DNA of 64,000 nt from Basidiobolus meristosporus CBS 931.73 (taxonomy: Eukaryota > Fungi > Basidiobolomycota). The notes below the pieces were generated by a model. That model saw only the letters and a program-made list of their open reading frames with translations. It searched no databases and had not been told where the DNA came from. Of the stretch, positions 4,525-64,000 are shown one piece after another (position 1 is the first letter of the stretch; the number at the start of each line of letters is the position of its first letter). A program made the position numbers and the translations under genes. Location of the stretch: contig MCFE01000195.1 of NCBI GenBank assembly GCA_002104905.1, positions 70,454 through 134,453 of the forward strand, in the 5' to 3' direction.

Positions 4525-5069
4525 ATATTCACCTAACTTAGTTGCTTAGATTGTTACCTTAAAATCCTTGAGAATACTGAACAAATTCCTTGCTGGGATT
4601 TACTTAAAATATCTGCACCAAAATGCCAGGTACCCAGAATATGAAAATTCTCAAAGTTGTCCAAACAGCTGCAAACTTAGCAAACATGTTCTTGAGACCT
4701 TCCTTAACCTATTCTACATGTTTGTAATGCCAATACCATGTAAAAGTATAAATACTACTTTTACATTCAATAAATCATTAAGTGAAAACCGCAAAATCTT
4801 CTTGTCCTCCCAATCACTTGCAATATCTCCAGGACTCTTACAAAAAATATCAGGTACCCAGAACATGAAAGTTCTCAAAATTGTCCAAACAGCCCCAAAC
4901 CTAGCACACATTTTCTTGGAATCTTCCTTAACCTATTCTACATGTTTGTAATGCCAAAACTAAGTAAGAGTATAAATACTGCTTTTACATTCAATATATC
5001 ACTAAGTGAGAACCATATAATCTACTTGTCCTCCCAATCACCTCCAATATCTCCAAGACTATTACAACA
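4525..5069 (+). repeat. Two further tandem, 5'-truncated copia LTR units (~4525-4845 and ~4846-5069)
   Basis: LTR blocks such as GTATAAATACTACTTTTACATTCAAT and CTTGTCCTCCCAATCAC repeat; the last unit ends TTACAACA. Confidence 0.85.
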
Positions 5070-5913: not shown

Positions 5914-6009
5914 CCCTATGAAGAATAATCTGGTCCTGCATTGGGATCCAATACAGATCAGCCGTCAGGATCCCACAAGGAGGCCATGCTAATGCCAGCA
6001 GCTTGGAAT

Positions 6010-6377
6010 TGTTACAAGTCTTGGTATAAGAGTTGTAGAGGAATAGGGAGTTTAGCTAGTATTGTATTCACTAAAACTTGAACTGATTTTTATTGAGGTT
6101 CCAGCAGCTCCTTATATACATTTTGCCAGATCAATTGCTGACTAATTGTATTTCCTAATGTAGGTTGTGGCTGATGACTCATTTGATTGCATCATCATCA
6201 CCCAATAAGATCCTACTTAATATATCTATTTCTGTCTGATAAGGATCTGCTGATTCATTTGCTGACTAATGCTACTGATTTCATAGATAATACTGATGTA
6301 CTGATAACCTAAACATATACTAACTGATTTGACTAAAAACTGATCTAACTTAAACATTCAAGCGGCAGATCATAACA
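6010..6377 (-). repeat. A1 3' LTR
   Basis: TG...CA, 368 bp, preceded on the minus strand by PPT TAGTAGGGGAGAA. Confidence 0.95.
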
Positions 6378-6390
6378 TTCTCCCCTACTA
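6378..6390 (-). promoter_or_regulatory. A1 polypurine tract
   Basis: TAGTAGGGGAGAA abutting the 3' LTR and overlapping the stop codon. Confidence 0.8.
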
Positions 6391-10521: not shown

Positions 10522-10567
10522 CTTGAGGGTGGTTTCTTCTTTCTTCAGGAGGGAGGTTTCTGGTTAT

Positions 10568-10578
10568 CGCTGCTACCA
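10568..10578 (-). promoter_or_regulatory. A1 PBS, likely complementary to the tRNAiMet 3' end
   Basis: TGGTAGCAGCG, 1 nt after the 5' LTR. Confidence 0.7.
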
Positions 10579-10579
10579 A

Positions 10580-10947
10580 TGTTACAAGTCTTGGTATAAG
10601 AGTTGTAGAGGAATAGGGAGTTTAGCTAGTATTGTATTCACTAAAACTTGAACTGATTTTTATTGAGGTTCCAGCAGCTCCTTATATACATTTTGCCAGA
10701 TCAATTGCTGACTAATTGTATTTCCTAATGTAGGTTGTGGCTGATGACTCATTTGATTGCATCATCATCACCCAATAAGATCCTACTTAATATATCTATT
10801 TCTGTCTGATAAGGATCTGCTGATTCATTTGCTGACTAATGCTACTGATTTCATAGATAATACTGATGTACTGATAACCTAAACATATACTAACTGATTT
10901 GACTAAAAACTGATCTAACTTAAACATTCAAGCGGCAGATCATAACA
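10580..10947 (-). repeat. A1 5' LTR
   Basis: Identical by eye to 6010-6377. Confidence 0.95.
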
Positions 10948-11329
10948 GAATTAATAACTCTCTACACAATTGTATGACAGGATTCTACCAGTTTTCTGCT
11001 GACTTCACGGCCAAATAAAGTAAAAAACTTAATGGTGTTTAAGTGGTCTTTTGCCAACAGTTGCATAGCATTGTAACAGTCTTCATGTGCTCTACATTTA
11101 TTTGAACTGATCCTGCTGACCAATACATCCAATTATCTTATATGGCAAGAAGCTTCAAAGTGTTCTGACAGCCTCCTTGCAAGCCCCCAATGGCATTATA
11201 ATGGCAGTACAGGGGCCTAGAGCTAGTTCTGCATAGTGCTTCTGTACCAATTTACCAGATAGTATTTCCTTTTCTGACCTCCCCTTGTGCCATTCCTATA
11301 TCCATAGTAGAAGCACCCCTCCCTCTATA

Positions 11330-13775: not shown

Positions 13776-14256
13776 AGCCTACCTGACTCAGTTTGCGCCA
13801 GGTGACAAGTGCAATCAGGTGCAGTTATAAAAGTATCAAGTGGCTGGCAAGATATTGTTGATACAGTAGTGCCAGATGAATGGTCAAATATGACTTGTGT
13901 GGCAAAACACTGGCCACAATCCTTGCAATACTTCCTATGCTGCCTGCATGGTTCATTGCTTAGATGCTTGTTACAAAAGCCACATGGTCATGTTTCTCTT
14001 CTCTTATGTTGTTGAATCAATGTAGTCTTGTCCATGGGGCAAACAGTTTGACACCCAACAATGTAATGCTATTATACTACTTATTGGTCAGTACTCATGT
14101 AAATTTAAGACAGTCTTGTATTTGAGTCCTTGCACCAACTTGAATGTTCAATTCAATGATGACCCTCCATAGGAGGTATTATAGATAAAGTTGTAGCACC
14201 AAATACACATGTATATATAGCTCTATTTCCCTTTGGTTTGACTCACTTCCATATAT

Positions 14257-16133
14257 ATGCTGCCAAGAAATAAAGCAAAGTTGTCTAATTCCTAACCAAC
14301 CCTCACTTTTGAAAGTAGCAGAGGTGTGGTTGAATAACTGCTTGCTCTGACATTCAGTGCAACTACCACGGCTACATTCAAAAAAGGCCAGCTTGGCAGT
14401 GTGCTCACTGTAGGTAATAATGCAGACTCCTGAGGCTCTCAGTCAAGCAGTCAATTGAAAATCTCTGCAGAGCTGCAGGCTGACCATAGTGTTCAGGCAG
14501 ATTAGAATGTAGCACAAGCAACACCTTTGGTTGGATACAAGTAAGTGGCTGCCATACATCATCACCACCCATATTAGCTACTATATTGCCAGCTTATACC
14601 AAAGCATTAATGTAGCCATCAGGTGCAGTAGCCCATAGGATAGTATGTGAAGGCCCTGGGAAATTACAATATAGTCCAGAATCAGGATGAGTGGATAATA
14701 TGTGTAGAGCAATCAATATCACAGGCAGAGAAGGCAGTATCTTTGCTGCAAAGAAGAAACCCAAGTAGCTTGGTGTCACAGTCAAGAGTTGAGCCATTTT
14801 GTATGTAACAGCAAGGGAACACAGTCTTTGAAGCACACCAACAGTGGCCAAAGATAAAGCCCACAGAAAAGCCTATCACAGCATGGTAGGGAGAGATTGT
14901 AGATTCTATTACAAAGCCTAAAAATCAAAAGACATTGAAGATCTTTAAGGCTGTAGAGTGCAATGATCAAGAGTGGGCAAATATCTAAGAAGCCATAAGA
15001 AGCCTAGCCTGCCATTACCTTAAGGCTGGCATACCTTGAGACCATCAGTAATTCAAGGCCAAGCCAGATGTGGTTGACTAGTTCCATGAGTATTATCCTA
15101 GATTAAAACAAGCAAACAAATCTTGGGCCAGCATTTTGATGCTAAGAAAGTGTCTCAAGAAGAGCAGAAACTATCAAAGGCACAAGTACAAGGGTGTAGT
15201 GGCTAAAATCCAGTGGCTTTCTCAAGAGCCTGTTACAAGGAGGGCCAAACATACTAACAAGAATCAAAGATGCATCAGGTAGTGAGAAGAGTGCCAAAAA
15301 GGGACAGGTAGGCAAACACAGATGGAATATCATATCATTAATCAAGGAAAAGGTGTTGTTCCATCAAAGAAGCACTTGTTCATTGAAGTACCTGGCAGTG
15401 ATAGAAGTCAGCAGATTCCTTAGGAGCCTGACAAAACAAGGGCTTAAAGCTCAAAACAAGCAGCAAGAAAATGTCAGATTGTCAGTAGAGTGCCAGTAAG
15501 GGGCATGCCGGCCAAAGCAAACACATCAGAGCAGTATTTATCAAGGAGAAAACATAGCTCAATACAAGAAGCACTCAGACACATTAGCTGTGAAAGACCC
15601 AGCAGTGATAGAGCAATGGTTGTATAGAGAAAGGTCTGCCCAAGCTAGGGGTAGGGAAGTATAAGTTAAAAGCTTCTGCTCCTGCCAATTAATGACATTA
15701 GCCTGGAACAGGTAAAATCCCAACATAGCCAAGAAGAATTACCAATAAGACAAAAGCTGTTTTCACAAGAGTTGGAAGTGCCATCAGTTGAGCTATACTC
15801 CAGTGAGGTAGATGAGTTTGCAGAGAAAGGCAACTTGTCTACCACAACCTCCATGTCCTGCATTGTAAATAGGGTATAGATTGTGCCAACAGACATAGGA
15901 ACAATATCAAGAATTCAAAAGAGTGTCATAATTACTACAGTGGAATTTTAGAACATTAATAGGCACACCAAAAGGTGCAGCACTTCTTCAAGAGCAGTGC
16001 TCAAGAAAATACACTTGAAGATTGCAAGGATCTATTGCAATGACTGACAGATGAGGTTCCAGACCTTGTAGTACCAGCTGAAGACCAGGTTGAATGGGGC
16101 CCAATGAATGAACAGTGGTATAAAGCTCTAAAA
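14257..16133 (+). pseudogene. D2 ORF1 (divergent accessory gene), decayed
   Basis: Starts ATGCTGCCAAGAAATAAAGC (D7: MPPKNKAK); homologous to reverse complement of ~57300-59201. Confidence 0.8.
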
Positions 16134-16560
16134 CCCATGAGAAGTTATTGTGATGATTCTTTCAAAAGACTGTTATAAACTTAATATCCTGTGACTAAGA
16201 GGTATTGTTCCCTTCAGTACACTGTGCAAAGACTGTCAAAAACTAAATTATACCACAATTTTGCAGAAAACTTAGTCAAAATTTCTCATTCCAACAATAC
16301 CAAAGTGGCTTTTGATTGATTCTCTGCCAATTCTCTCACTTTCTGATCCTGGTGACTCTATCACCTCCTATATTTGCATGCATTCATTGGCTATTGCCTC
16401 TTTTATACACTCTTTGTTTCCTGACTTAGTTGTTTCTCTTACTTTTGATGCATACATATGGAGATATTGCTGTTGAAGCTCGAGTTGTACCTCAATTGCC
16501 AATTGTACTAGCCTATACAAGTCCCCAATCTGACACTCTACAACACTATCTGGCGCTCTA
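16134..16560 (+). mobile_element. Left end of another D copy (D8), inserted in D2 ORF1; probably continuous with D3
   Basis: CCCATGAGAAGTTATTGTGATGAT resembles the D7 left TIR; minus-strand ORF DLYRLVQLAIEVQL...KECIKEAIAN matches the D7 ORF1 C-terminus. Confidence 0.7.
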
Positions 16561-26494: not shown

Positions 26495-27568
26495 TGTAGT
26501 GAGGTCACAGTGACACCAACTGACAGATGTGCTCATTCACATATTTTCTACTTCCCTATATCTCTACTACATTTATTTTAGTTTTATCCCATTTGTCTTA
26601 CCCAGATCAGTACTATCCCATAAGCCTGGTTGGCTATCACACCTGCTTACCTTATTGCATAAGTTACCCCTCACTTTATGTAAGATTACTAGCTATAAGT
26701 ACTTCTATATTAGGCAAGTACCCGTGCCAGTACCCGTAACACATGATCAGCCCGTGTCACCATCCCTACCAGCTCTCATACCGTATATGGTATCCCCATG
26801 TTACACAGGTTTCAGAATACTGATTCCTGATTGGTTGGATGTGCTGTGCCTCTTAGAACCTTCCAGCACCTACTTAGAACATTCTTAGGTCATTCTGATG
26901 TCATTAAGATATCTATTGAACATCCGGAACCTTCTGGAACACCATGATTAGTAATCACTTAGCCAGTGAGAAAAGTATACAAGGGAGGCTATCCTCAACA
27001 ATAAATCATCATCCCTTTTATCAATATACCAACTTGTTGATTAGTGTGATCACTGCTACCTGCTGCTACCTGAACTTCCAACCCTAGACCACAGGACACT
27101 CCCAGGAAACCGCGCTGACAGCCAACTGACCTTGGAGGCACTACTTGTGAGGAATACTCAGAGTAGGTATCTTTTATTATATTTGATTCTTTCCCAAGTT
27201 TGTTCTTGTACAGGCAAAGATACTTTTCTGTCTTTGTAACTATTGACCAAAGCTGCATTCTTATCAAGTCCCTGCTGGTGGAGTTTACAGTTGTTTTGAC
27301 TTTGGAAGCTTTAGTACATTGTCATCTCAAAGGACGCTGAACCCAGCACATACTTTTGTTAAGACACCAACTAAGTTGGGGATTGTAGCTCAATAGTTTT
27401 CCCTTGACAAGCTTGTGGCTTTATTCCCCTTCACATTAGATTAGAGACAGAACCCAAGTATTCCTAGCAAGCTTTTGCCAGAGGTTATTGCACCCAGTGA
27501 ACACCCCACACACAAAACACTTGAGAAGTGTTGGACGTATCTCTCCCTTGGACCTATACACCACCACA
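26495..27568 (+). repeat. LTR family C solo LTR (1074 bp) with non-matching flanks
   Basis: TGTAGTG...CACCACA, near-identical to 60594-61664; flanks ACGG / CCGG. Confidence 0.9.
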
Positions 27569-27938
27569 CCGGAAGGTTCTAAGAGGCACAGCACATCCAA
27601 CCAATCAGGAATCAGTATTCTGAAACCTGTGTAACATGGGGATACCATATACAGCATGGAAATGGTAGGGATGGTGACACGGGCTGATCATGTGTCACGG
27701 GTACTGGCACGGGTACTTGCCTAATATAGAAGTACTAATAGCTAGTAATCTTACATAAAGGCGAGGGGTAACTTATGCAATAAGGTAAGCAGGTGTGATA
27801 GTCAACCGGCTAATGGGATAGTACTGATTGGGTAAGACAAATGGGATAAAACTAAAATAAGTGTAGTAGAGATATAGGGAAGTAGAAAATAAGGGAATGA
27901 GCACATCTGTCAGTGGGTGTCACTGTCACCCCACTACA
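27569..27938 (-). repeat. Inverted partial LTR-C (first ~370 bp)
   Basis: Reverse complement of 26495-26866. Confidence 0.9.
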
Positions 27939-34442: not shown

Positions 34443-37400
34443 TGTTACAAGTCTTGGTATAAGAGTTGTAGAGGAATAGGGAGTTTAGCTAGTATTGTAT
34501 TCACTAAAACTTGAACTGATTTTTATTGAGGTTCCAGCAGCTCCTTATATACATTTTGCCAGATCAATTGCTGACTAATTGTATTTCCTAATGTAGGTTG
34601 TGGCTGATGACTCATTTGATTGCATCATCATCACCCAATAAGATCCTACTTAATATATCTATTTCTGTCTGATAAGGATCTGCTGATTCATTTGCTGACT
34701 AATGCTACTGATTTCATAGATAATACTGATGTACTGATAACCTAAACATATACTAACTGATTTGACTAAAAACTGATCTAACTTAAACATTCAAGCGGCA
34801 GATCATAACATTCTCCCCTACTAAAGTTGAGAGGGTTCTCCTGAATCTCTTTTCTTCTGATACCAATATCTTGATGGTTCAGTATTATCAGCAAGTCTTG
34901 CAAGCTTGAGTCTGTCCCTATGCACTAAGTCTTCCCGGATATTGCCTTGTTTGTCCACCAGTTGGTAAGTTGCAAATGGACATTCTCTGATGATCTTGAA
35001 TGGTCCTGTCCATTGTGGCTCAAACTTCTTCCGAGTGTTGTTTCTTAGCAATACAAAGTTCCCAACTGTCAATGCTTCTGGTGCTATAGTCTTATCAAAT
35101 CTCTGCTTCATCTTTTCTGCACTTTGAGATACTTTGGTCTGTGCCTCTTGACGTCTTTGTTCCAGTTGCTGGTGTCTACTTGGCTGACTGAGTTCATCTT
35201 CTAAGGTGTCTGTAAGCTTTGGTTGTGTGAGATCTCCTGGAATCCTTGGTTCACATCCATAAACTAAGTAAAATGGTGATTGCTGGGTGGTGTTGTGTAC
35301 TCTGACTCTGCATGCAAAGAGTGCTTGGTCTATATACTCATCCCATCTACTGACAACTCCATTTGCATACTTGGTCAGCATTTTTCCAAATAATCCATTA
35401 AACCGCTCAGTGACTCCATTAGTTCTGGGGTGATATGCCGAGGTTTTCAAGTGTCTGATCTGCTGCATTTCCAGGTAAGCCTCTAATGTCTTTGCCATAA
35501 AGTTTGCACCTCTATCGGATAAGATCTCCACAGGGCATCCAAACTTCATCAGGATCTCATGGTAAATGAAACTTGCAACTTCTTGTTCACTGGCTATTGG
35601 TACAGCTTTAGCAACTGGCCATTTAGTGGCATGGTCAATTGCTACTAGGATCCAACGGTTGCATTTCCTGGTAGTTGGCAGTCTTCCAATAAAGTCAATT
35701 CCCCATCTCTCAAATGGTCTTACAGGCTCCAAAGGGAAGAGTTCGGCAATTCTTTGTGGCTGGCCTTGATTGATTTGGCAGTTTGGGCATGTTTTTACTA
35801 GCTTCTCAATGTCTTGTTTCATTCTGGGCCACCATGCTCTGGCTTTTACAAGGCTATAGGTTCCTTCAATCCCAAGATGTCCATATCCATTGTGTAGCTT
35901 ATGTATTAAATCCAGGCGAGCAACATAAGGACAATAGGCAATAGGGCTTCCATCAACAATTCGGTAGAGTGTTTCATTCTGTACAACAAATTTGCTGGCC
36001 TCATCACGGATTATCTTCTTGATATCTTCATCCACCTCATTAGGAATGGCTTGGTCCTCCAAGTACTTTGGTAATAGGCTAGGCCAATCTGATTCATGCA
36101 CCAAGTTGAGTTGTGCAACTTGATCTAATCTTGATAAGGCATCAGCAACCGTGTTGTTTTTTCCAGGACAGTAGACAATCTCCAGGTCAAATTGTTGAAT
36201 GTATTCACTCCATCTTGTCATTCTTCTAGAGAGTACCTTCTGAGTAAATATATACTTGAGGGAGGCATGATCAGTCTTCACAGTGCATTTGACTCCTTCA
36301 ATATAGCATCTCCATGTCTTCAAACAGTGTATTATAGCAAGCATCTCCTTCTCATGAACTGGATAGTTTTGTTCTGCTGAGTTCAGTTTCTTGGATTCAA
36401 AGGCAACAGGGTAGTCCTTTCCCTCGTGTTCTTGGCTCAGCACTCCACCAATTGCATAATCTGAAGCATCTGTGCACAGAGTGAACTCTTTTCTGAAGTC
36501 TGGTATTCTTAAGCTTGGCAGCTTAGCAAGTTCATTCTTTAGTGTCTGGAAGGCAGTCTCACAAGCTATGTCCCACTTGTAGGTATTGTCTTTCTTGAGG
36601 ATATCAGTTAAAGGGGCTGCAATACTTGCAAATGACTTGACAAATCTCCGATAATAGGAAACCATTCCAAGGAAGGATCTGAGTTCTGATATGCTATGGG
36701 GCTGCTTCAAATTCTTGATTACTTCCACCTTCTTGGGGTCTAAGGTTACTCCTGTGCTAGTCACTATGTGTCCCAGATATTCTACGTGTTCTTTGAAGAA
36801 TTCACACTTGGCTAGCTTGCCGTATAGCTTGTTCTCTCTTAGTTTCTTCAAGACCTTTTCAATGTGCACCATGTGATCCTTTTCTGTCTTGCTGTATATC
36901 AATATGTCATCCAGGTAGATTATCACAAACTTGTCTAAGTACTCCTGAAAGACAGTCTGCATCAGCGTCATGAATGTTGCAGGGGCATTAGTGAGGCCAA
37001 AACTCATGACTAAGTACTCGTAATGTCCATATCTGGTCCTGAATGCTGTCTTAGGGATATCTTCTGGTTTCACCCTAATCTGGTTGTATCCTGACATGAG
37101 GTCGATCTTGCTGAAAATAGTGGCTCCATTAAGTTGGTCCAAAAGCTCATCAATCCGAGGTATGGGGTACTTATTCTTGACGGTAACTGAGTTCAGGGCT
37201 CTGTAGTAATGCACATCCTAAGTGTTCCATCCTTCTTTTTCACAAAAAGCACTGGTGCTCCCCAGGGTGACTTGCTGGGCCTGATGTATCCTTGCTCCAA
37301 TAGCTGATCAATTTGTCTCTTCATTTCCTCCAATTCCAATGGACTCATTCTGTAAGGTGTCTTGCTTACTGGAGGGCTATCTCCTGTGTCAATGGCATGA

Positions 37401-39380
37401 TCCACGTCTCTGACTGGTGGTAGGCTTACAAGCTCATCTGGAAACACATCTGAGTATTTCTTCAAGAGAGTCTGGACCTGCTGGGGTGCTGGGGTAGAGA
37501 AATCCTCCTGTAATACCGCCATGAGGAACATCTCGGTACCTTTTCTAAGTGCTCTACAGAACTGGGTCTTGCTAAGTTCACTTGTCTCACACACACTGGA
37601 ATTGACCAAGTTGAAATCCAGCCTGGCAGGTAATAGCTCATAGGTCTTGTTGTCTTTTTGGATCTGAGTAGCATGGGTTCTCCAGTTGATTGATGGATTA
37701 CGACAAAATAGCCAGGTTTTCCCAAGTACAAGGTCAAACTTGCAGTTCCCAAATATATAAGCCTGTAGGTCTTCTTCATAGTCATTGATCTTCATTCTTA
37801 CTGGCTGGGTAATACGGTTGATTATGTGGGAGTTCCCATCAGCTGTGGAGACTGAAGTTGATTTGGTAGGTTCCGAGTTGATTCCAGCTTTCAAAGCAAA
37901 TTGCTCTGACATGTACTCATGCGATGCTCCTGAGTCAATCATGATCTTGGCAGGTACTCCATTGATTGCTCCATTCAGGTACAATAACTTCCCTGAGTTT
38001 GAAGTCATTTGGGACAAGTACTCTTCTGTCATATGGAAGGTGAGTTCCAAGTCTTCTTCAAGCTCATCTTCCTCATTATTGTGTTCATGGGACTCAATAT
38101 GGTTGAAGGTTCTTGTTGGCTGGTGTCCATTTCTTCTCTGAGGGCAGTACTTTGCAATATGTCCCTGCTGGTGGCAATTGAAGCAAAGTCCTCTCTTCTT
38201 GCATTCTTCTGAGGAGGGGTTCTTCTGCATAGCGTCTATTTCCATTGGTACTGCTTCTGATTGTCTTCTTTCATAATGATTATAGCCTTTCTGACTAGTC
38301 ACTGTAGGCTTCCCAACTCCAAACATAGCTGAGTCATAGTCAATGGCAATCTTGATGGCTTCTTCAATAGTCTGAGGTCTTCGGTAATTGACTTCCTTGC
38401 GAGTTCTTTCTTTCAACCCATCAATAAAGTATTCAACTTGATCCAAGGGGTCCATTCTTTCAATTTGTCCAAGTAGACATCTGTACTCATAGATGTATTC
38501 TTGCACCATTCCTTTCTGTCTGAGTGTCTTTAACTTCCTTCTTAGTAGTGTCTGCTGGTGTGGAGGTTCAAAAGCATCCTGAATTTCCGACACAAACTCA
38601 TCCCAGGTAGAGATTGTAGAGCATCCCATCATAGTAGCTGACCTGATCTTGTTGTGGTACCACTGTAAAGCTGCATCTGCCAGGTAAGAAGCTGCATAAT
38701 GCAACTTGCTCTCTGGAGCAATTCCTTTAGCTTTAAAAGCTTCTTCAATCTGAAAGAGCCAAGTTCCCAGGTTTTCATTGACTCTGCCATGGTACCGGTT
38801 GACCTTCACACTAAAGTTGCTCTTGACAGGGCTTTGCTGGCTCTGAGCCATGGTAGTCATTCCTTGTTGCTGTTGGCTGAGGATCTGGAGTAGCTGTTGC
38901 TGTTGGGCCAGGATTTGCTGCATGGCATTTTTCCATTCTTGATTGTCCGACATCTCGAGGGTGGTTTCTTCTTTTCTTCAGGAGGGAGGTTTCTGGTTAT
39001 CGCTGCTACCAATGTTACAAGTCTTGGTATAAGAGTTGTAGAGGAATAGGGAGTTTAGCTAGTATTGTATTCACTAAAACTTGAACTGATTTTTATTGAG
39101 GTTCCAGCAGCTCCTTATATACATTTTGCCAGATCAATTGCTGACTAATTGTATTTCCTAATGTAGGTTGTGGCTGATGACTCATTTGATTGCATCATCA
39201 TCACCCAATAAGATCCTACTTAATATATCTATTTCTGTCTGATAAGGATCTGCTGATTCATTTGCTGACTAATGCTACTGATTTCATAGATAATACTGAT
39301 GTACTGATAACCTAAACATATACTAACTGATTTGACTAAAAACTGATCTAACTTAAACATTCAAGCGGCAGATCATAACA
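34443..39380 (-). mobile_element. Gypsy family A copy A2, full length (4938 bp)
   Basis: LTRs 34443-34810 and 39013-39380; TSD CATG/CATG; nearly identical to A1. Confidence 0.98.
34821..38953 (-). pseudogene. gag-pol: A2 gag-pol with a 1-bp deletion in RT at ~37207
   Basis: ORFs 37193-38953 and 34821-37214; A1 GTAGTCAATGC vs A2 GTAGTAATGC. Confidence 0.92.
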
Positions 39381-44100: not shown

Positions 44101-45317
44101 CTTGTTGACAGAGTAGAGATCACTCTTACACATAAAGTAACAGTATCTGGAACTTAAAAGGCTATCACAATGCCTTCAGTGAGATTTGGAACATTAAAAG
44201 GCACACCTAGAGGTTGCAGCACTTCTTTGAGAGCAGTGCTCAAGAAAATGCACTTGAACATTGCAGGGATTTATTTCAAAGACTGGCAGATGAGGAGATA
44301 GACTTTGCAGTGGCTGCTGAAGACCAGGACATATGGGAACCAGTGAATGAACAGTGGTATAAAGCTGTAGTGCTCCCACCAAAGTCCAGGAAGCAGAGTG
44401 TTGTGGTGGTGTATAAATTCACAGGAGAGATATATCCAACAATTCTTTAGTGTTTGGTGTGGGATGTTCACTGAGTGTGATAACCTCTGGCAAATGCTTG
44501 CTAGGAATACTTGGGTTTTGTCTCTAATCTGATGTGAAGGGGAATGAAGCCACAAGCTTGTCAAGAGAAAACTATTGAGCTACAATCACAACTTAGTTGG
44601 TGTCTTAACAAAAGTATGTGCTGGGTTCAGTGTCCTTTGAGATGACAATGTACTAAAGCTTCCAAAGTCAAAACAACTGTAAACTCCACCAGCAGGGACT
44701 TGATAAGAATGCAGCTGTGGTCAATAGTTACAAAGACAGAAAAGTATCTTTGCCTGTACAAGAACAAACTTGGGAAAGAATCAAATATAATAAAAGATAC
44801 ATAAGGTAAGCAAGTGTGATAGTTAGCCAGCTTATGAGGTATTACCAATCAAGTGAGACAAATGAGCTAAAACTAACACAAGGGTAGTAGAAAAATAGGG
44901 AAGTAGAAGACATGGGAATGAGCACATCTGTCAGTGGGTGCCACTGTGACCCCACAACAGTGTTACAGCTAAGTTTCAACAGAATTAATCAATTTGTATG
45001 TATGAAAAGTAAGAGAAACAGATGAGTCAGATAGTAAGGAGTATGAATACAAGGCAATAGCCAAGAAATGCCTACAAATGTAGGGGTTGATAGAGTGTCT
45101 GCAACCAGAAAGTGAGAAAACTGGCAGAGAACCAATCAAAAGCCACTTTTGTATTGGTGAGATGAAAAATTTTGACCAAGTTTTTGATGATATCTGGGGT
45201 AATGTTATTTTTTTGACAGTCTTAGCGCAGCATTCCAATGGGATTAATACTTCTTAGTCATGGGACTTGAATTTGTGATGGCCTTGGATGGGATCATCAC
45301 AACAATTTTTATAGCAG
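41130..45317 (-). mobile_element. Family D copy D6 (transposase remnant on minus ~41130-41900; ORF1 on plus ~42690-45270; degraded left TIR ~45300-45317)
   Basis: Collinear with reverse-complemented D7; GGATCATCACAACAATTTTTATAG resembles the D7 left end. Confidence 0.75.
44402..44959 (-). repeat. LTR-C solo, internally deleted (558 bp)
   Basis: Both LTR-C termini present; TSD GTGT/GTGT. Confidence 0.88.
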
Positions 45318-48932: not shown

Positions 48933-49597
48933 TGTAGTGGGGTCACAGTGACACCCACTGACAGATGTGCTCATTCCCATATTTTTGACTTTCCTATATT
49001 TCTACTACCCTTATATTAGTTTTGTCCCATTTGTCTTACTTGATCAGTACTATCCCATAAGCTGGCTGACAATCATGCCTGCTTACCTTATTGCATGAGT
49101 TATCCCTTACTGTATGTAAGATAACTCAATGTAGGTACTTCTATATTAGACAGGTACCTGTGCCAGTTCCCATGACACATGACCACACTGTGTTGCTATT
49201 CCTGCTACTTTGATACCATATATAGTATCCTTATGTTACACAGGTTTCAGAATACTGATTCCTGATTGGTTGACTGTGCTATGCCTTTGAAAACCTTCTG
49301 GCACCTACTTATGGCATTCATAGCTCATTCTGATGTCATCAAGATTTCTATCTGACCCTTGGAACCTTCTGGAGCAGTATGATTAATAATCACCTAGCCA
49401 GTGAGAAAAGTATATAAGGGAGGCAATCCCTCAACAATAAATCATCAACCCTTTTATCAATATACCAACTTGTTGATTAGTGTGATTACTGCTGCCTGTT
49501 GCTACCTGAACTTCCAATTCCAGACTACAGGACACTCCCAGGAAATCATGCTGACAGCCAACTGGCATTGTAGGCACTACGTGTGAGGAATATTCAG
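48933..49597 (+). repeat. LTR-C, 3'-truncated
   Basis: TGTAGTGGGGTCACAG start; homology to LTR-C ends at GAATATTCAG. Confidence 0.85.
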
Positions 49598-54395: not shown

Positions 54396-56849
54396 AGCAA
54401 AACAGGTTATATCTTGTCTGGTTGGGTCTTTGGGCACTTGATACTGATTGGATCTCCGGGCATTTGATACTGGAATGATCACTTCTGGGATATTCTTGGG
54501 CACTGATTTAGGCTGAGCCGTGGTTTTAGAGTCTACTGGAGTGAAATAATCACAATGTTTTGCTCTGATTCAGCCCTGACAATTAGTGGACTCAAGATCT
54601 TAATTTTATCATCATCTGAAGTCATTTTTTGTGAAAATTTGATTTTTCATCAAACAACACATCCCTGGACTTTATCAGCTTCTCTGCTATGGTATGGTGG
54701 AGTATGTATGCTAAACTTGCATTGCAGCAGCCCAAAAAAAGCATTTATAACTTTTAGTTCCAATTTAGACTGTTTTCCAGGCAGCTTCTTGCCATTTGCT
54801 CTACACCAAAATCTCTTGAGATGCTCTGTACCTGATCTCTATCCATACCATGCTTCAAATGGAGTAGAATTGCAGAGTATTCTGTGATGGCTTCTATTTT
54901 TAAAGTATAGAGCAGTTGCAAATGATTCCATTCAGAAATCATAGGATAATATCTCATTATGATTAATAGACTTGCCATATCAGTTATTGTTCTGTTTGTA
55001 TATTCTGCCACTGCATTTTGCTATAAAAAGTATGGTGCAGTAGTCTCTTGCTTTATCCCATGAATTTTGCATAGGTGAATGAAGAGTTTTGAGGTGTATT
55101 CTCCAGCATTGTCAGAGCATATATTCTTAACTTTTCACCAGTGTCTCACTCTACCATGACTTTAAACTCCTTGGGCTTAGACAGAGCTTCTACCTTTCTC
55201 TACATGCAGTAGACCCACAAGTTGTATAATCATCAATGAAAGTGATTAAATACTTCATCCCACCTAAGAAAAAATAGATCTAATTCACTCAGATCTGTGT
55301 GAATTAGATCTATTTTTTCTTAGTTTTGATCAACCCAGAGCTCTTGAATTGTTACTTGGCTTGTTACCAATGTATGCAGACTTCACAGTGCTCCACATTA
55401 ACCAGGGGATCAATTTTACTCCAGAAAATAGCTGATCCTTGATCATGTTGTGCAAAAAATCAAAATTGAGGTGTCCAAATCACCTGTACCAGAGCATTGG
55501 TGTTTCTTCATTTAAGTTATTTATATTGGCATTCAGATATGGTGGAATAGAAGTCAACCTATATAGACTCTTAGCTCTGATACCCAAAGAAGTATGGGCA
55601 CCAATTTGATCAGTGATCTTGCATCCTGAATTGTCAATATGGAAGCTGAATCCTTCTGGAGTGGCCTTGCTTACAGATAGTAGGATCTTAGCTATTTTGG
55701 GTACATATAATACTTGGTTGAATGTAAGTTTAAGGCTTCCTCCACAGCTTTTAAGGTTTACTTGGATAGTTCCTTCTCCCACTACAGCAAGTGTTCTATG
55801 GTTACCCATGAAAACCTTCTCAATTGGAATATCCTGATGTTAGGTGAAAAGTTCTTTTTGGTGTGCAAAGTGTTGAGATGCTCCAGAGTCAATGTACAAC
55901 ATCTGAGAGTCCTTGTTTGTGAGCACATTTAGTGCAGATATGAATATTCTATCCTCTGATGTTGCAGCATTTCCATATTCAGGCTTATTTTGCAGATTAT
56001 CTCACATTTTGAAACACTGGTTGGATGTGTGTACTTCCCATTTGCAGTAGTTACAAAACAGGTTGCTGTTGCCTTTGAAGGGTCTTGAGTGTAGAAATTA
56101 CTAAGTTGTCACCTGAATATTCATGCTAACTTAGTCATTTTGATCTTATTCTTTGATTAGCATTCTGTCCTGACCAAATTTCTTGTTGGGATTTACATGG
56201 AATATTTTCACCAAATTATCAGGTACCCAGATTTTGATCTTTCTCAAGGTTGTCAAAAGCCCTGAAGCTTTGCACAAATATTCCTTGGACCTTTGTGAGC
56301 AAACTCTACATGATTTTTGCTCTACTTTATCAGAAATATAAATACTATACTTTTGATCTATAAATCTACAAGTGAGTAATAGACTTGTTCCATTGGATAG
56401 AGCCACATTGAGCCATGAGTGCCATACAATGCCATAGTGTGTCAGACAGGCCAAGTGAGCCTATACTTGGCCACAGAGTGTGAAACATAGATCTTCATCT
56501 TCATGAAAAGCAGCCTCTGTGTTTCACCTATGATGCAGGAGATAATCCATTTTTTGACATTTTCTTGAGGATCAATATTATGCAAGATGTGTAAGAGCAC
56601 TGAAGGATTGAAGATATACATCTGGTACTCAATACCTGTGGCACTCTGAATCTAGCAACTGTGGCTTGTAACATGTCACAAAAATGCATGGCACTATCTT
56701 GGTCTACTGATACTATCTGGCACTATACTTAAATATTAGCCCTAAAGTAAGATTAATACAAAGCACTTATAGTGTAGGCTCACTTGGCCTCCCTGGCACA
56801 CTATGGCATCCCCTATGAAAAATTATTGAGATGATCCATCAAAAGGCCG

Positions 56850-59201
56850 TCACAAACTTAATGTCACGTGTACTGATCTTGTCAGGACACTGTCCAGAGA
56901 CCATTGAAAAATAATTGCACCCCAGATTTCACAAAAAACTTTGTCAAAATTTTTCATCACAACAATGTATAAGTGGCTTTTGATTGGTTCCCTGCCAATT
57001 TGCTCACTTTCTGATTCCAGACACTCTATTGCCTCCTGTGTTTGTGTGAATTGATTGGCTATTGCCTCTTTTGTACACTCCTTACTTCCTGACTCAACCA
57101 TTTCTCTTACTTTTCATGCGTACAAATTGATTTATTTCCATTGAAACATCAGTTGTACCTCAAATGCCAATTGTATTGACCTATACAAGTCTCTATACCC
57201 TACACTAACATTAAGCCCAACCCCACACTCAACAAGTAACTCCATTAAGATCCACCACTCAATAAGTATTTCTGCTGTAATGCTCTGGCTCCACAACTTT
57301 GGCAGGAACCCAACAGCTTTATGCCACTGTTCATTCACTGGTCCCCACATGGCCTGGTCTTCAGCCAGCACTGCAAGGTCTAGCTCCTCATCTACCAGTC
57401 TTTGCAATAAATCACTGCAATATTCCAGTGCATTTTCTTGAGCACTGCTCTTGAAGAAGTGCTGCAACCTCTTGGTGTGCCTATTAACGTTCCAAAACTC
57501 CACTGAAGGCATTGTGATAGTCTTTCAAGCTCTTGACATTGTAGCCTTGTCTGTCAGTGGGATCTCCACTCAGTCAATAATGGAGGCTGTGGAGGCTGTG
57601 GTAGACAAATTGCCTTTTTCAGCAAACTCATCTACCTTGCTGGAGTGTAGCTCAACTGGCTGCGCTTCCAACTCTTGTGAAAACAGCTGTTTTCTTGTTG
57701 GTAATTCTTCTTAGCTATGATGGGATTCAGTCTGTTCCTGACTTGCGGCATTAATTGGCAAGAACTGCAGTTTTTTTTGCATGCCTCCCTGTCTCAGGCT
57801 TAGGTAGACATTTTTCCCTTTACCTTTTCCTTTATCACTGCCAGGTCTTTCACTGTTACTTAGTCTGAGTGCTTCTTGCAAAGAACTACATTTTCTCCTG
57901 GATAAACTCTGCTCTGACGCATCTGTTTTGGCCTGCTTGTCCCTTGCTGGCACTCTTCTGGCAACCTGACTTTTCTTTTCAGCTTGTTTTGAGCTCTCAA
58001 CTGTAGTTGTGGCAGGCTCCTGTATAAGCGGCTGGTTTTTATCACTGCCAGGTCCTTCACTGCTACTTTGACTGGGTGCTTCTTGAGTGGTACTACGCTT
58101 TTTCCTTGATAAATGTTGTGCTGGTGCATCCATGTCTGCCTGCTTGTCCTTAATTGGCACTCTTCCAGCTGCCTGACGTCTCTTTGACGCTTTTCTGGAG
58201 CTTTTGGCCCTGCTTGTAATGGGCTCTTGAGGAAGCTGCTGGTTTTTAGCCATGGCACCCTTGTTGTTCTGCCTTTGATAGTTTCTGCTATTCTTAAAAT
58301 ACTTTCTTAGCATACCAATGCTGGCTCAAAATTTGTTTGCCTGTTTGAATCCAGCATAATACTCATGGAACAAGTCAAGTGCATTCTGCTTGGCCTTGAG
58401 TTCCTAATGGTCCCATGGTATGCCGGCCTTAAGGTGATGGCATGCTAGACTTCTGACAGCCTCTTGTATATTAACCCACTCTTCATTTTTGCACTCAAGG
58501 GCTTCACGGATCTTCAATGTCTTTTGATTTTTAGGCTTTGGTACAAACACCACATTGTCTCCCTCCCATACTGTGATAGGTTTTTCTGTGGGCTTTATCT
58601 TTGGGCACTGTTGTTGTGCTTCAAAGACTGTACGGTGTTCCTCTGCTGTTACATTGGGAAATGGCTCAATTCTTGGCTGTGACATTGAGCTACTTGAGTT
58701 CCTTCTTTGCAGCAAAGATACTGCTTTCTCTACCTGGGATGTTGATTGCTCTACACGTATTATTTGCTCATCCTGTTTTGGGACTACCTCCTGATTTCTC
58801 TGGGCCATTGCATCTATCCTATCAGCCACTGCACCTAATTGCTTCATTAATGCTTTGGTATAAGCTGACAACATACTTGCTAATATGGGTGGTGGTGATG
58901 TTATTATGGCCACTTGCTGATCTTCAACAGAGGGTATTGCGTTTGCTACATTCTCATCTGCCTGAGCATAATGGTCAGCTTGTGGCTCCACAAAGGTTCT
59001 CAATTGCCTACTTGACTGAGAGCCTGAGGAGTCCGCATTATTACCTTCAATGGGCACACTGTCCACAGGGCCTTTTTTGGATGTAGCCCCGCTTGTTGCA
59101 CTGAATGTCAAAGCAAGCTGTTGTTCAACCGTTCTTCTGTTGCTGTCAGTGGTGGGGTTTGGTTGAGAACCAGACAACTTTGCTTTATTTTTTGGCGGCA
59201 T
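56850..59201 (-). pseudogene. D7 ORF1, ~784 codons in one frame, broken only by nonsense codons; unknown function
   Basis: ORFs 58404-59201, 57711-58313, 57132-57512 and 56850-57101 share one frame; several stops are sense codons in D4. Confidence 0.85.
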
Positions 59202-59687
59202 TTATATGGAAGTGAGTAAAACTAAAGGGGAAATAGTGTTACATATACGTGTATATGTGGTGCCACAACTTTATTAATAAAGCTTACTATGGCAGGTCAT
59301 CATTGAATCTTAAATTCATGTAGGTGCAATGTCTCAAATACAAGACTGTCTTAAGTTTGCATGAGTATTGACCAAAAAGTGATATAATAGCGTTACAGTG
59401 TTGAAGGTCAAACTGTTTGCCCCATGGACAAGACTACTTTGACTCAACGCCGTAAGAGAAGAGAAAAAAGACCATGTGGCTATTGTGGCAAGCCTCTCAG
59501 CCATGAAGCAAGCAGACAGCATAGGAAGTATTACAAGGATCATGGCTAGTGTTTTGCCACCTAAGTCATATTTGACCATTCATTGGTCACAACTGTACCA
59601 ACATTATCTTGCTTGCCAGTTGATACTTTGATATTGGCACCTGGCCATCTTTGTCACCTTGCGCAAACTGAGTCAGGTGAGTTTGTG

Positions 59688-62600
59688 ATGCCTTTAGGCT
59701 CACCTCAGCCTTCTGAATATGGCATGCAGAGTGATAGCTCTGACAAAGAAGGTTCACTGATGGATTTTGAGCCTATCTCCCCAAACAACAGTACTACATA
59801 TGAGCCCGGTCAAATCCCTATATGCAATGAAACAACACCTGTTGAAACAAATGCCAAGGATACTTTATGGAGCCAAGTGAGCCCAGTAATCCATCTACTG
59901 GTGAATGATGTAATGTTGTGGCTAGAGAAGCGGCACGTATCCACTAGTATCAGTAATGGGGGCTTTGAGGACTTATTACTACTTCTTGCCAAAATCATAC
60001 TGGGATGCAACTTACCATGTACATGGTACAAGTGGACAACCGTCATGCGGCTGGCAACATATGATCCAGAGACTGTCCTGATTCCAGCATGTGTTAACAG
60101 TTGCATGGCATTCACATCCAAAAATGCTACCATTGCAATGGGTCCAAATTGTCAGGAATCCACTACCATTGAGGGAAAGCATTGTTCACACTCCGGATAT
60201 ATTCCGGTCATACCTTGTCTGAGGAAGCTGATGCAGTCCAACAAATATTGCAAAGCTATACAGTACCACATTCAGTATCAATCAGGCGCAAACATATCCA
60301 ATATATTTGATGGCAAACATTACAAACAGCTCAGAAGCAAGGGCTACATTGAAGGTATGTATGACCATGCCTTTGCTTTAGCACTGGATGGATTCTCATT
60401 AAACAAGTACTCTACCAGCAAATCCTGCTGGCTACTGATTCTCATCAATCTGAATCTGCCGCCCATCTTACGGTATCAGAGCAATAATCTGATGGTAGTC
60501 TCACTGGTATCTGGGCCTGAATCACCATCCAACCTGGACAGCTACCTGTATCCATTGCTGAATAAATTTTGTATGCTTTCCAGCAGGATACAGTGTAGTA
60601 GGGTGACAGTGACACCCACTGACAGATGTGCTCATTCCCTTATTTTCTACTTCCCTATATCTCTACTACACTTATTTTAGTTTTATCCCATTTGTCTTAC
60701 CCAATCAGTACTATCCCATAAGCCGGTTGACTATCACACCTGCTGACCTTATTGCATAAGTTACCCCTCACTTTATGTAAGATTACCTGCTATAAGTACA
60801 TCTATATTAGGCAAGTACCCGTGCCAGTACCCGTGACACATGATCAACCCGTGTCACCATCCCTATCATTTCCATACCATATATGGTATCCCCATGTTAC
60901 ACAGGTTTCAGAATACTGATTCCTGATTGGTTGGATGTGCTGTGCCTCTTAGAACCTTCCGGCGCCTACTTAGAACATTCTTAGGTCATTCTGATGTCAT
61001 TAAGATATCTATTGAACTCCGGAACCTTCTGGAACACCATGATTAGTAGTCACTTAGCCAGTGAGAAAAGTATATAAGGGAGGCTATCCCTCAACAATAA
61101 ATCATCATCCCTTTTATCAATATACCGACTTGTTGATTAGTGTGATCACTGCTACCTGCTGCTACCTGAACTTCCAACCCTAGACCACAGGACACTCCCA
61201 GGAAACCACGCTGACAGCCAACTGACCTTGGGGGCACTACTTGTGAGGAATACTCAGAGTAGGTATCTTTTATTATATTTGATTCTTTCCCAAGTTTGTT
61301 CTTGTACAGGCAAAGATACTTTTCTGTCTTTGTAACTATTGGCCACAGCTGCATTCTTATCAAGTCCCTGCTGGTGGAGTTTACAGTTGTTTTGACTTTG
61401 GAAGCTTTAGTACATTGTCATCTCAAAGGACGCTGAACCCAGCACATACTTTTGTTAAGACGCCAACTAAGTTGGGGATTGTAGCTCAATAGTTTTCCCT
61501 TGACAAGCTTGTGGCTTTATTCCCCTTCACATTAGATTAGAGACAGAACCCAAGTATTCCTAGCAAGCTTTTGCCAGAGGTTATTGCACCCAGTGAACAC
61601 CCCACACACAAAACACTTGAGAAGTGTTGGATGTATCTCTCCCTTAGACCTATACACCACCACAACGGTAAATGGCTGTCATGTAAAAGTGCATACTATT
61701 ATCTGCATTGGAGATACCCCAGCCATCAGCAGGATAGCAGGTTTTTCCGGGCATAGTGGATGGTATTGCTGTCAAATGTGTGAGATCCAGGGGATTTACT
61801 CCATAACTCACACACATCATTATTACCCAAACACCAGCACCAAGAACATCATCTCTCCATAAAGAGAACGTACAGAAGTAAGCATGCAATTGCAGCAAAG
61901 TTGGCAAGCTATAAGCCATTGGCCAGAATATGGAATCAATTGGAGACCAGAGATACTTAAGATAGAGGGTATCTGTGGGAGCAAAATCTCTCCACTGGGA
62001 GCAATGCATTTGCTTTTCAACAATATCCCTATACTGATGACCAAGTTGTACATGGGGCATTTCAAACTAAATGAGCCCTTTGAGATACCAGAGAAATTTG
62101 ACAGAATTGGCAAGATATTACAGAGTATCTGCTACCCTAAGTACTTCTCACAGGCTCCAATTAATATTCATATGCATATGCAACAATACAAATGCAAAGA
62201 CTGGATGAACTGGATATTTTTATTCAAGTGGTGTTCTGAAGCCATTCCCACCAAGAGTACATTGGAAGCATTGGGAGTCATATGTGGACCTTGTAGGAAT
62301 ATTTATCCAGAAGCAGATCACCAATGCCAACTTGACACATCTACAGCTGTTGTGTGAGGAGTTTGTGACGGGATTTGAGCGGCTATACTACAAACATAAA
62401 GCTGAATGCATAGATCTCTGCTGCTACTATATCCATTCTCTACTCCATCTTGCTCTGTGTGTGTACAATATCAGGCCTTGCTTCACCTTTTGGGAGTTTC
62501 CTATGGAGCAGATGTGTAGGGAGATAGGAAGACAAGTCAAGTCACAGGTACTACCATATCCCAATCTCATCAAGAATATTACCTTCAAGTCCATCATGGA

Positions 62601-63147
62601 TGTGATGAGTTGGCACATGGAGGACAGCCAGAAATAGTTGGAAAATACTGAGGACAAATGTGCACATGGAGACACCTATGCCATGGCATTAAGAAGCTAA
62701 GCAGCCCCAAAGCATGGGTAATCAGTTAAGTAATGCAAAGTTGGGTTGGGTGCAACAAGCAACTAATTTTTATCCGGAAAACTCCACCAAGATATGCCAG
62801 ATTTCTTGTGGTCACAAGCCAACTTCTACACCATTAAATACAGAATTCACACAAACAAAAGCCAGAGCGCACCTATAAGGGGGACCAGAATCCAGCAGGG
62901 AGATGTAATATATTGGCTAAATACCAAGAAGTTCTTTGCGGATATTCAGGAGGTATTCATGGCAGAAGTGGCAACAACCAAGCATATGTTTGCAAGATGT
63001 ATATGCTACCAGCAGTACAAGGTATATGGCAACTTTGCAAGTATCACACTAAAGAGCTGTAAAGTTGAGGTGATAGAAGTATGTCAATTGCAGCAGGTGT
63101 GCATGTTTGTAGAGGTTAGTAAGCAGGAGGCCATAGTTTTTTTTTGA
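59688..63147 (+). pseudogene. D7 Transposase_21-family (CMC/EnSpm) DDE transposase, split by LTR-C
   Basis: ACVNSCMAFT; LALDGF...SCWLLILINLNLPP...SGPESPSNLDSYLYPL; GDTPA...GHSGWYCCQMC; AMHLLFNN; YKCKDW; FWEFPMEQ. Confidence 0.9.
60594..61664 (+). repeat. LTR-C solo LTR (1071 bp)
   Basis: TGTAGTAGGG...CACCACA; TSD ACAG/ACGG (one CpG transition). Confidence 0.9.
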
Positions 63148-64000
63148 TTCCAACTATATGTGGAATACCCAAGGTAGTAGTGGGTAAGCAAATAAAGAAA
63201 GGTGATTCTACAGTGGAATATAGGAATTGCACAAGGGGAGGTAGAAAAAGAAACTACTATTTGGTCAATTGGTACAGTAGCATTATACAGAACCAGCAGC
63301 AGGCCATCATACTGCCAAGAAAAAACCATCAGAGTCTTGCTGTGTGGCTGTCAAAATACCACCAAGTTTCTTGCCATATAAGGCAATTGGAAGTCCTGGC
63401 CAACTGGATCCACTCAAAATAGTAATAGAGTGCTGAAAGACCGCAACAATGCCATGCAAATATTGTTACAGCACCAATCAAAAATTGTCAAGCTTTATCC
63501 CTTTATTTGGCTGTAAAATTTGCAAAACACCATCATGATCTTGTTATAAGATTGTCAGGAGGGTCACTAATTCCAAGCTGCTGTTATTATGATGGTCTCT
63601 AAACAGGATCTTGACGGATGATCCGGATTGGATCCACCTGCAGGACCAAATTATTTTTCATAGGGATCATTTGGCGCACTATGGCATCACTTGGCACTCA
63701 TGGCTCAATGTGGCACTATCCAACGGAACAAGTCTAATATGTGAGTCCTCTAGTTCTCCACATATACTTCCAATACTCCTCAGAATATTACAACATTGAG
63801 TACCTCCTTTGTTAGTTACCATTGCTCATTAAAGCATTTTCTTCTTCCTTCTTATCAGCGCCTAATTATCTGAATTCTTCATTCAGGAGCCTTCCAAATA
63901 AGTAATTTAAGGTCAAATCTGCGTTGTGGACTCTAGGTCTGATGTAAGGCCCCAAAGCTTATCTGTCAGGCTATTTAGGAAGGTAGCTATCACATCCTCA

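Follow-up and report, generated by a model that had tools for sequence, protein, structure and literature searches.

Among the described EnSpm/CACTA (CMC) transposons, En/Spm makes both of its proteins from one alternatively spliced, co-oriented transcription unit (PMC1636069), and CCC termini have been documented for non-plant Transposase_21 elements, namely those of animals (PMC1636069), in agreement with what a preliminary description of the present DNA had stated for some non-plant CMC elements. A large CMC-EnSpm expansion in Basidiobolus has already been published from domain counts (PMC5751038). The window analysed here (64,000 nucleotides of Basidiobolus meristosporus CBS 931.73, contig MCFE01000195.1) is a dense transposon nest with many nested insertions. 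We read the interval 56811-63665 (copy A), with a probability of about 0.8, as one old, full-length, coding-dead insertion of a two-gene EnSpm/CACTA (CMC) cut-and-paste DNA transposon.

The active ancestor of this insertion had CCC...GGG termini and 3-bp target duplications, and carried two apparently intronless genes on opposite strands, whose starts were about 200 bp apart. One encodes a transposase of some 970 aa, which combines a zinc-finger-like motif at the N-terminus with a DDE core of the Transposase_21 type. The product of the other, ORF1, measures some 690 aa and contains a coiled coil, basic repeats and a conserved helical domain (about 105 aa).

Termini, target site and state of the copy

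The left terminal inverted repeat (TIR; 56811..56827, plus strand) begins with CCC and pairs at 16 of 17 positions with the right one (63649..63665, minus strand). Both are bordered by an ATC target site duplication (TSD; 56808..56810 and 63666..63668), and the element is embedded on both flanks in a tandem repeat of 19-20 bp. Removing the element and one ATC in silico rebuilt a repeat unit that agrees with the adjoining one at 18 of 20 bases; the flank could therefore be used as an internal empty site. The TIR match, the ATC on both sides and the rebuilt empty site bear out the CCC ends and the ATC duplication reported previously. A TIR motif scan allowing up to three mismatches gave five matches, against 0.75 expected by chance. 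Among the copies examined only copy A kept both ends; the right terminus of copy B is of the same CCC..GGG type. The 3-bp duplication fits CMC/EnSpm elements (3 bp, with a range of 2-5 bp in the wider clade), and the termini are CCC..GGG instead of the CACTA or CAC..GTG set for that group.

Subterminal repeats were limited to one degenerate TIR-like copy and one 24-bp block common to both ends in inverted orientation. The left subterminal block (56881..56916, plus strand) comprises the 24-bp motif (56881-56904) and, overlapping it, the degenerate direct TIR copy (56900-56916); the right 24-bp block lies at 63592..63615 (minus strand), and copy B carries it at its right end too.

The copy is structurally full-length and mutationally dead. 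The word "complete" used for it earlier cannot be kept: ORF1 has internal stops, and the transposase gene has stops, a frameshift and a solo LTR of 1,070 bp. None of the copies seen was intact, all those in the window and in a further B. meristosporus contig (L002) being broken. Introns were rejected as the cause of the interruptions in ORF1 (to codon 559) and in the transposase gene (59547 and 59562), because sister copies have sense codons at the interruptions compared; these are point nonsense changes. A possible 49-nt intron at 57112-57160 runs directly into a stop and was also rejected. RIP-like mutation bias was ruled out, the private substitutions being of mixed spectrum.

The solo LTR (60594..61663, plus strand; TG..CA ends) interrupts the catalytic domain of the transposase, and is flanked by a 4-bp TSD (ACAG/ACGG, at 60590-93 and 61664-67). 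The corresponding site is empty in copy B and L002, and the insertion is absent from a copy 78-85% identical in MCFE01000403. This LTR family also occurs at other places in the window, and in L002, where its TSD (TTGG) is perfect. Other observations made around the element were a Gypsy polyprotein encoded in its neighbourhood, and one B. meristosporus gene model partly built from the element, which is an annotation artefact.

The plus-strand transposase gene

The transposase N-terminus (59424..59546, plus strand) is 49% identical to the N-termini encoded by two metagenome contigs (L001 and L003), and contains a conserved zinc-finger-like motif (C-x2-C...H...H, 59475-59522). The first part of the remaining gene, up to the LTR insertion (59565..60593, plus strand), matched the Pfam Transposase_21 profile (E 4e-11; score 42.9 bits, cut-off 28.6; profile positions 29-102), and the gene is thus of the Transposase_21 type, as first proposed. 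The second part (61671..63419, plus strand, 3' end approximate) was recognised by its motifs and by weak profile matches: a continuation of Transposase_21 on the 3' side of the nested LTR (positions 120-157, E 0.028); and a DUF4218 match (E 0.087) obtained with the homologous piece of L002. Transposase_21 was the sole transposase family in a Pfam scan at E values up to 1, which gave no Plavaka, KDZ or Harbinger matches.

The catalytic motifs were picked by inspection against the definition in PMC12730594, rather than by alignment to reference transposases. They comprise the first D in LDGF (60384-60401), the second D in IGDTPA (61707-24), C(2)C as C-Q-M-C (61770-81), H(3)H as H-S-L-L-H (62434-48) and E in FPME (62497-62511); all lie in the expected order, and are also conserved in L002 and copy B. 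On the basis of this domain and these motifs the element is classified as a fungal (Basidiobolus, Zoopagomycota) element of the EnSpm/CMC type; the Transposase_21 domain, the CCC termini and the 3-bp TSD uphold the earlier assignment to a fungal CMC element.

Where copy A has the stops at 59547 and 59562, copy B and L002 encode Q or K. Further lesions were found in the second part of the gene, in which the frame shifts near 62205-62215 and stops occur at 61860 and at 62635-62766. The start of the transposase is most likely the ATG at 59424 and not that at 59688, since the conserved zinc-finger-like N-terminus is situated upstream of the latter. The two divergent ATGs are then 222 bp apart and not 486 bp as given in the preliminary description.

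Both genes were searched as separate pieces, without a joined or read-through model. Word searches were blank for the transposase (365 aa) and for the N-terminal 265 aa and C-terminal 130 aa of ORF1, among proteins of 0.55-1.75 times the query length; this length rule makes the blank results uninformative on full-length relatives. Scans of JGI metagenome contigs with the transposase N-terminus and with the ORF1 domain returned zero relatives.

ORF1 and the head-to-head layout

The family-specific second gene lies on the minus strand. The frame of about 784 codons previously assigned to ORF1 does run from the ATG at 59201 to a stop at 56850-56852, and holds seven internal stops (codons 266, 292, 497, 544, 559, 690 and 696). 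The first five (58404-06, 58326-28, 57711-13, 57570-72 and 57525-27) are matched by sense codons in the sister copies. Copy D shares the TAA at codon 690, which sits within AATAAA, so the in-frame continuation over codons 690-784 (56850..57134, minus strand) is probably 3' UTR or subterminal DNA. ORF1 therefore probably ends at codon 689 (57135), although copy B', which reads through codon 690, disagrees. The gene would then comprise about 689 codons (57135..59201, minus strand; a pseudogene here) and stop about 320 bp from the left terminus, a more likely distance than the 40 bp or so stated before.

Coding constraint shows ORF1 to be a real gene. Between lineages, identity was highest at codon position 2, followed by position 1 and far behind by position 3 (about 0.65, 0.55 and 0.31-0.40, respectively), dN was 0.41-0.54 with dS saturated, and the MPPK start was kept in L003. 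The protein opens with a disordered N-terminus and a coiled coil, continues with the conserved helical domain (about 105 aa) and a pair of basic repeats, each about 69 aa long, and closes with a helical C-terminal region; AlphaFold models gave a confident long helix, which fits the coiled coil, and a four-helix domain.

For the profile alignment (A1), stop-free pieces of different copies were tiled over ORF1 codons 1-543; the ORF1 C-terminal and transposase pieces were excluded, because MAFFT stacked them on each other. Run against 1.84 billion representative proteins, the profile gave four real ORF1 matches, all from Basidiobolus or from the two metagenome contigs, the named relatives being ORX90044 (B. 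meristosporus) and KAK9738516 (B. ranarum); a bacterial repeat protein of 1,502 aa (P0003) was judged a spurious match. The Pfam scan of the ORF1 pieces and their relatives returned zero families, those of plant TnpA (Transposase_23/24) included, and this agrees with the view that ORF1 is unrelated to TnpA. There were zero PDB sequence matches to ORF1 and no significant match in fold searches, and none of these three approaches detected a Myb/SANT, zinc-finger or other DNA-binding fold; a Myb/SANT reading of the tryptophan-spaced ORF1 domain was consequently left unsupported.

The spacer between the divergent ATGs (59202..59423, 222 bp), a candidate for a promoter common to both genes, is conserved in copies A, B and C and in L002; in L003 it measures 191 bp. 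Its geometry suggests that this short spacer may drive both genes divergently, as a putative bidirectional promoter. A scan of the spacer for bacterial-type promoters and terminators was disregarded, since the host is eukaryotic.

The head-to-head layout was found in window copies B and C, in L002, and in L001 and L003, two diverged and short contigs of 1.8 and 2.4 kb, where the transposase N-terminus lies opposite an ORF1 with about 30-40% amino acid identity over the aligned parts. Judged by these sequences the layout is a conserved family feature: the recurrence of the divergent genes and their intergenic DNA in other copies of the window, as the preliminary description had it, was confirmed, and the gene pair was located outside the window as well. 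Within the window, each ORF1-like stretch lay inside a copy of this element.

Alternative readings and comparison with known systems

A family with this layout may already be catalogued, for instance as a Basidiobolus EnSpm entry in Repbase or Dfam. The published Basidiobolus expansion (PMC5751038) and the many fungal EnSpm families in Repbase speak for this; we consider it rather unlikely, given that our full-text literature search returned no paper describing the element.

As regards function, ORF1 might, in our main reading, be the counterpart of En/Spm TnpA or of the Myb-like protein of PIF/Harbinger: by analogy with these, it would be a self-associating, end-binding cofactor which may recruit or position the transposase at the TIRs and the subterminal 24-bp blocks. 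An improbable alternative is that the element keeps ORF1 not as a cofactor, but as a regulatory or anti-silencing factor (compare VANC of VANDAL, or TET/JBP) or as a selfish passenger. The failure of our searches to detect any DNA-binding fold or family in ORF1 and the scarcity of subterminal binding-site arrays are in line with it, as are the extra genes, thought to be anti-silencing, that fungal DNA transposons including EnSpm carry (PMC12730594). However, ORF1 showed no TET/JBP or other enzymatic signature, its fixed head-to-head co-inheritance across deep divergence suits an essential partner at least equally well, and the combination of a coiled coil and basic repeats would be common in end-binding cofactors. 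A composite origin, with an ORF1 from another element or a host gene that adjoined or inserted into an EnSpm copy later amplified, is suggested by the nested character of the window and by the lack of connection between ORF1 and known CMC accessory proteins, but is highly improbable: junction and spacer are the same in all the copies retaining the region, the arrangement extends to L001 and L003, although their DNA has diverged beyond alignment, ORF1 is not bracketed by an internal TIR or TSD, and the ORF1-like stretches of the window are confined to this element.

Beyond the cofactor reading of ORF1, we put forward a tentative and broader proposal, possible rather than probable: a distinct, unnamed CMC branch may exist in Basidiobolus and close relatives, marked by CCC termini, by duplications of 3 bp and by a gene pair that is obligatorily head to head, in which ORF1 would represent a new class of cofactor with an unseen helical end-binding domain, co-expressed with the transposase from a bidirectional promoter of about 200 bp.

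This analysis gives, within the literature searched, the first element-level anatomy (termini, TSD and gene pair) for the Basidiobolus CMC-EnSpm expansion, and extends to an early-diverging fungus the CCC-type termini known from animal Transposase_21 elements. It also provides a compact natural divergent two-gene transposon with an orphan partner, useful for the question of what directs CMC transposases to the ends of their elements.

Membership in other groups found no backing: Plavaka and KDZ (Kyakuja-Dileera-Zisupton) gave no Pfam model match; plant-type En/Spm sensu stricto disagrees with the missing TnpA Pfam match and with genes on opposite strands; and a two-gene element of the PIF/Harbinger type disagrees with the absence of both Harbinger DDE and Myb/SANT matches. 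PIF/Harbinger elements likewise make 3-bp TSDs, and their transposase depends on a separate DNA-binding partner encoded by the element; this serves as a working analogy and not as membership, since the transposase superfamily is unrelated and the Myb/SANT domain of the partner was not detected in ORF1.

En/Spm and plant CACTA elements have CACTA ends and dense subterminal repeat arrays, whereas the Basidiobolus element has CCC ends and sparse subterminal repeats; the second En/Spm protein, TnpA, belongs to Transposase_23/24, a signature that ORF1 lacks, and the En/Spm genes are co-oriented in one unit (PMC1636069), whereas those of Basidiobolus are apparently intronless and back to back. Fungi are also the hosts of the Pucciniales EnSpm elements (PMC12730594) and of Cryptococcus CNIRT6 and CNEST (PMC12810828), which share the C(2)C and H(3-4)H motifs in a transposase of the CMC type and, in Pucciniales, the 3-bp TSDs. 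They have CAC..GTG or CACTG ends, or TA duplications, unlike the CCC ends found here, and the available parts of their descriptions mention no divergent second gene like ORF1 (PMC12730594, PMC12810828).

The animal elements of Schistosoma (SmTRC1), Tribolium and Aedes combine Transposase_21 with CCC TIRs, as the Basidiobolus element does, and the Tribolium TIR starts with the same CCCTA (PMC1636069); the likeness is one of domain and termini, across different host kingdoms. Their accessory protein is described as fast-evolving and as having no homologues (PMC1636069), which we count as a likeness to ORF1. In contrast, the TSDs of the beetle and mosquito elements are 2 bp long instead of 3 bp, and the SmTRC1 proteins arise by alternative splicing of one unit instead of from two divergent genes (PMC1636069). 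The earlier suggestion of an undescribed system is too strong; the element represents a variant, at the level of a family, within a known superfamily, unusual for a well-known kind of element, and neither a new mobile-element type nor a new mechanism.

Ends, target site and neighbouring copies

Copy A of the EnSpm/CMC-type element (56811-63665) has inverted repeats at its two ends that agree in 16 of 17 positions, with no difference in the initial 13 bases, which start with CCC; the trinucleotide ATC flanks the element on each side. Scanning the whole window for this terminal motif (up to 3 mismatches) gave five matches against 0.75 expected, including both copy A ends, the end of another copy (5914) and a degenerate internal copy 89 bp inward from the copy A left end. 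The element lies in a tandem repeat of 19-20 bp (56740-56810 and 63666-63760, unit close to GCACTATGGCATCAWTTG), and removal of the element together with one ATC rebuilds a repeat unit that agrees with the following unit in 18 of 20 bases; this internal empty site establishes where the element begins and ends and that the duplication is of 3 bp. The CCC-type termini and ATC duplication of the preliminary description were thus confirmed. A 24-bp block, also found in copy B, occurs at both ends as an inverted pair, about 70-95 bp from each terminus; apart from it, subterminal repeats are sparse.

The window (40% G+C) is a nest of transposons with Copia and Gypsy polyproteins, and besides copy A it contains at least five other copies of the element, partly rearranged and with 71-91% nucleotide identity; another B. 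meristosporus contig, MCFE01000403 (L002), bears a copy 78-85% identical to copy A. Copy B (5914-16127) has a recognisable CCC terminus at 5914, adjoining an internal fragment of another copy (5226-5913), and its terminal region at the other end (16214-16523, about 300 bp) has the reverse orientation to the rest of the copy, suggesting either a local inversion or a separate second fragment. Within copy B lies a Gypsy/Ty3 element (6011-11054) with an uninterrupted minus-strand ORF (6388-10521; 1,377 aa, gag-protease-RT-RNase H-integrase); this retrotransposon may be young or active. Another Gypsy/Ty3 copy (34821-38953) is split in two ORFs.

The transposase gene and its decay

The plus-strand gene of copy A was recognised by Pfam Transposase_21 (profile positions 29-102, E 4e-11) ahead of a nested insertion, with a weak continuation past it (positions 120-157); the homologous piece of L002 gave a weak DUF4218 match at the expected site of the C-terminal part, and the Plavaka and KDZ models of the Pfam search gave no match. 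The CMC motif set as defined in PMC12730594 is present in order on the plus strand: the first D (LDGF, 60384-60401), the second D (IGDTPA, 61707-61724), C(2)C (C-Q-M-C, 61770-61781), H(3)H (H-S-L-L-H, 62434-62448) and E (FPME, 62497-62511). The gene is therefore of the Transposase_21 type, as had been proposed. Transposase and ORF1 queries were separate pieces, each searched apart, and word searches with the transposase pieces could not reach full-length transposase relatives.

A 41-codon segment starting at 59424 bears a C-x2-C...H...H motif and shows 49% identity to the N-termini of the genes facing ORF1 in two diverged metagenome contigs (L001, L003); the start previously placed at 59688 is probably an internal codon. 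Copy A has stops at 59547 and 59562, between this segment and the remainder, where copy B and L002 encode Q or K, so the ancestral transposase looks like a single continuous ORF of roughly 970 codons; no intron was detected in it. The copy A gene is also broken by a stop at 61860, a frameshift near 62205-62215, later stops and the 1,070-bp insertion (60594-61663), which falls between both catalytic aspartates. The transposase is thus destroyed and, with seven internal stops in ORF1, the element described as complete is not so in its coding capacity.

We read the insertion as a solo LTR on the basis of its TG..CA ends, its 4-bp duplication (ACAG/ACGG), its absence from the corresponding site of copy B and L002, and its recurrence elsewhere in the window (26495-27568; 27569-27938, inverted; 44400-44959; 48933-49597) and in L002 (1275-2342, 94% identical), in one case with a perfect TTGG duplication. 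The copies of this family, with TG..CA ends and 4-bp duplications, are 86-97% identical, more uniform than the surrounding EnSpm copies, which argues for more recent activity of the LTR. At 26495-27938 a full LTR copy adjoins an inverted partial one.

Taken together, these observations show copy A to be a Transposase_21/CMC-type element that moved by cut-and-paste, left a 3-bp duplication on insertion and has since decayed; we give this structural classification a probability of about 0.8.

The head-to-head pair and the ORF1 protein

With 59424 as the probable transposase start, where the N-terminus is conserved in L001 and L003, the copy A start codons are 222 bp apart (spacer 59202-59423) rather than the 486 bp first reported. 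The recurrence of the divergent layout and its intergenic DNA was borne out: copies B, C and L002 preserve the spacer together with the start of each gene, and a more divergent L002 fragment (4226-5264, 73% identity) crosses the same junction. Outside the window, the pair was recovered in L002 and also in the metagenome contigs L001 and L003, whose DNA does not align to the window, yet has the same geometry: in L003 the transposase ATG (456, minus strand) and the ORF1 ATG (648, plus strand) are 191 bp apart, and L001 has ORF1 on the plus strand from about 787, opposite a transposase N-terminus on the minus strand (319 to 2). All ORF1-like stretches in the window fall within copies of the element, none being independent of it. 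Judged by these sequence comparisons, the pair is an inherited feature of the family and not an accident of the copy A locus.

The minus-strand ORF1 frame runs from the ATG at 59201 to the stop at 56850, the 784 codons previously estimated, although seven internal stops interrupt it. The first five are Q, W or R codons in sister copies, and are therefore nonsense mutations; introns at these places were rejected on the same grounds. The TAA at codon 690 lies within AATAAA and is also present in copy D (copy B' reads through), so the original protein was probably about 689 aa long, with its end some 320 bp from the terminus instead of about 40 bp. Between the window family and its relatives in L001, L003 and the B. 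ranarum contig JASJQH010006008 (L004), amino-acid sequences are 40-47% identical, identity by codon position is 54-69% for positions 1 and 2 but 31-40% for position 3, and dN is 0.41-0.54 with saturated dS; the MPPK start is present in L003 too. By this pattern of substitution, ORF1 is a real gene. The 1.2-kb L004 carries two tandem, near-identical ORF1-like frame starts (350-772 and 776-1183), which suggests local duplication or assembly collapse.

AlphaFold predicted a long helix (pLDDT above 90) fitting a coiled coil, and a domain (pLDDT 77.5) of about 105 aa made of four helices, in which three tryptophans are conserved. Behind this domain come two repeats of about 69 aa, basic and rich in serine. 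They are encoded by a tandem duplication of about 207 bp within ORF1 (57785-58200, codons ~335-470), seen in every copy covering the region, L002 included, and thus older than the amplification. ORF1 gave no match in Pfam at permissive thresholds (including plant TnpA families, Myb/SANT and TET/JBP), in the PDB sequence search, or in Foldseek with E below 0.9. Profile searches with ORF1 pieces against 1.84 billion representative proteins (the C-terminal 130 aa by word search only, hence with thinner coverage) gave five matches, four of them real: ORX90044 (B. meristosporus CBS 931.73), KAK9738516 (B. ranarum) and two proteins from ENA metagenome contigs; the fifth, a bacterial repeat protein, was judged spurious. 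The preliminary description of ORF1 as an unrelated protein agrees with these results. For ORX90044 (K493DRAFT_357335; L002 10001-12020), annotated as a 135-aa hypothetical protein, the gene model is chimeric, joining an ORF1 fragment to a second part that by eye resembles the helix-hairpin-helix region at the N-terminus of a Rad51/Dmc1-type protein.

On the model of En/Spm TnpA and the PIF/Harbinger partner, ORF1 might tentatively be a transposition cofactor: it would self-associate via the coiled coil, bind the ends through the helical domain and/or the basic repeats, and aid transposase assembly on the terminal inverted repeats and 24-bp blocks. As to function, the chief alternative is that ORF1 acts against silencing or as a regulator. 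As a candidate promoter, the roughly 200-bp spacer could drive both genes.

Comparison with known elements

The genes of plant CACTA elements are generally co-oriented. This is the arrangement of En/Spm (PMC1636069), whereas those of the Basidiobolus family are head-to-head. CCC termini are shared with animal Transposase_21 elements, which also have a fast-evolving accessory protein (PMC1636069); in contrast, the described fungal EnSpm/CMC families have CAC..GTG or CACTG ends, or TA duplications (PMC12730594, PMC12810828). CMC-EnSpm expansion in Basidiobolus is known from transposase-domain counts (PMC5751038), and our literature search found no paper on this family or on CMC elements whose two genes are divergent. 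The preliminary description was largely right, but copy A is dead and several measurements were corrected; its proposal of a distinct fungal CMC lineage is partly supported. The element belongs to a Basidiobolus family of a known superfamily; unusually, its genes form a conserved head-to-head pair, one of them encoding an orphan protein.
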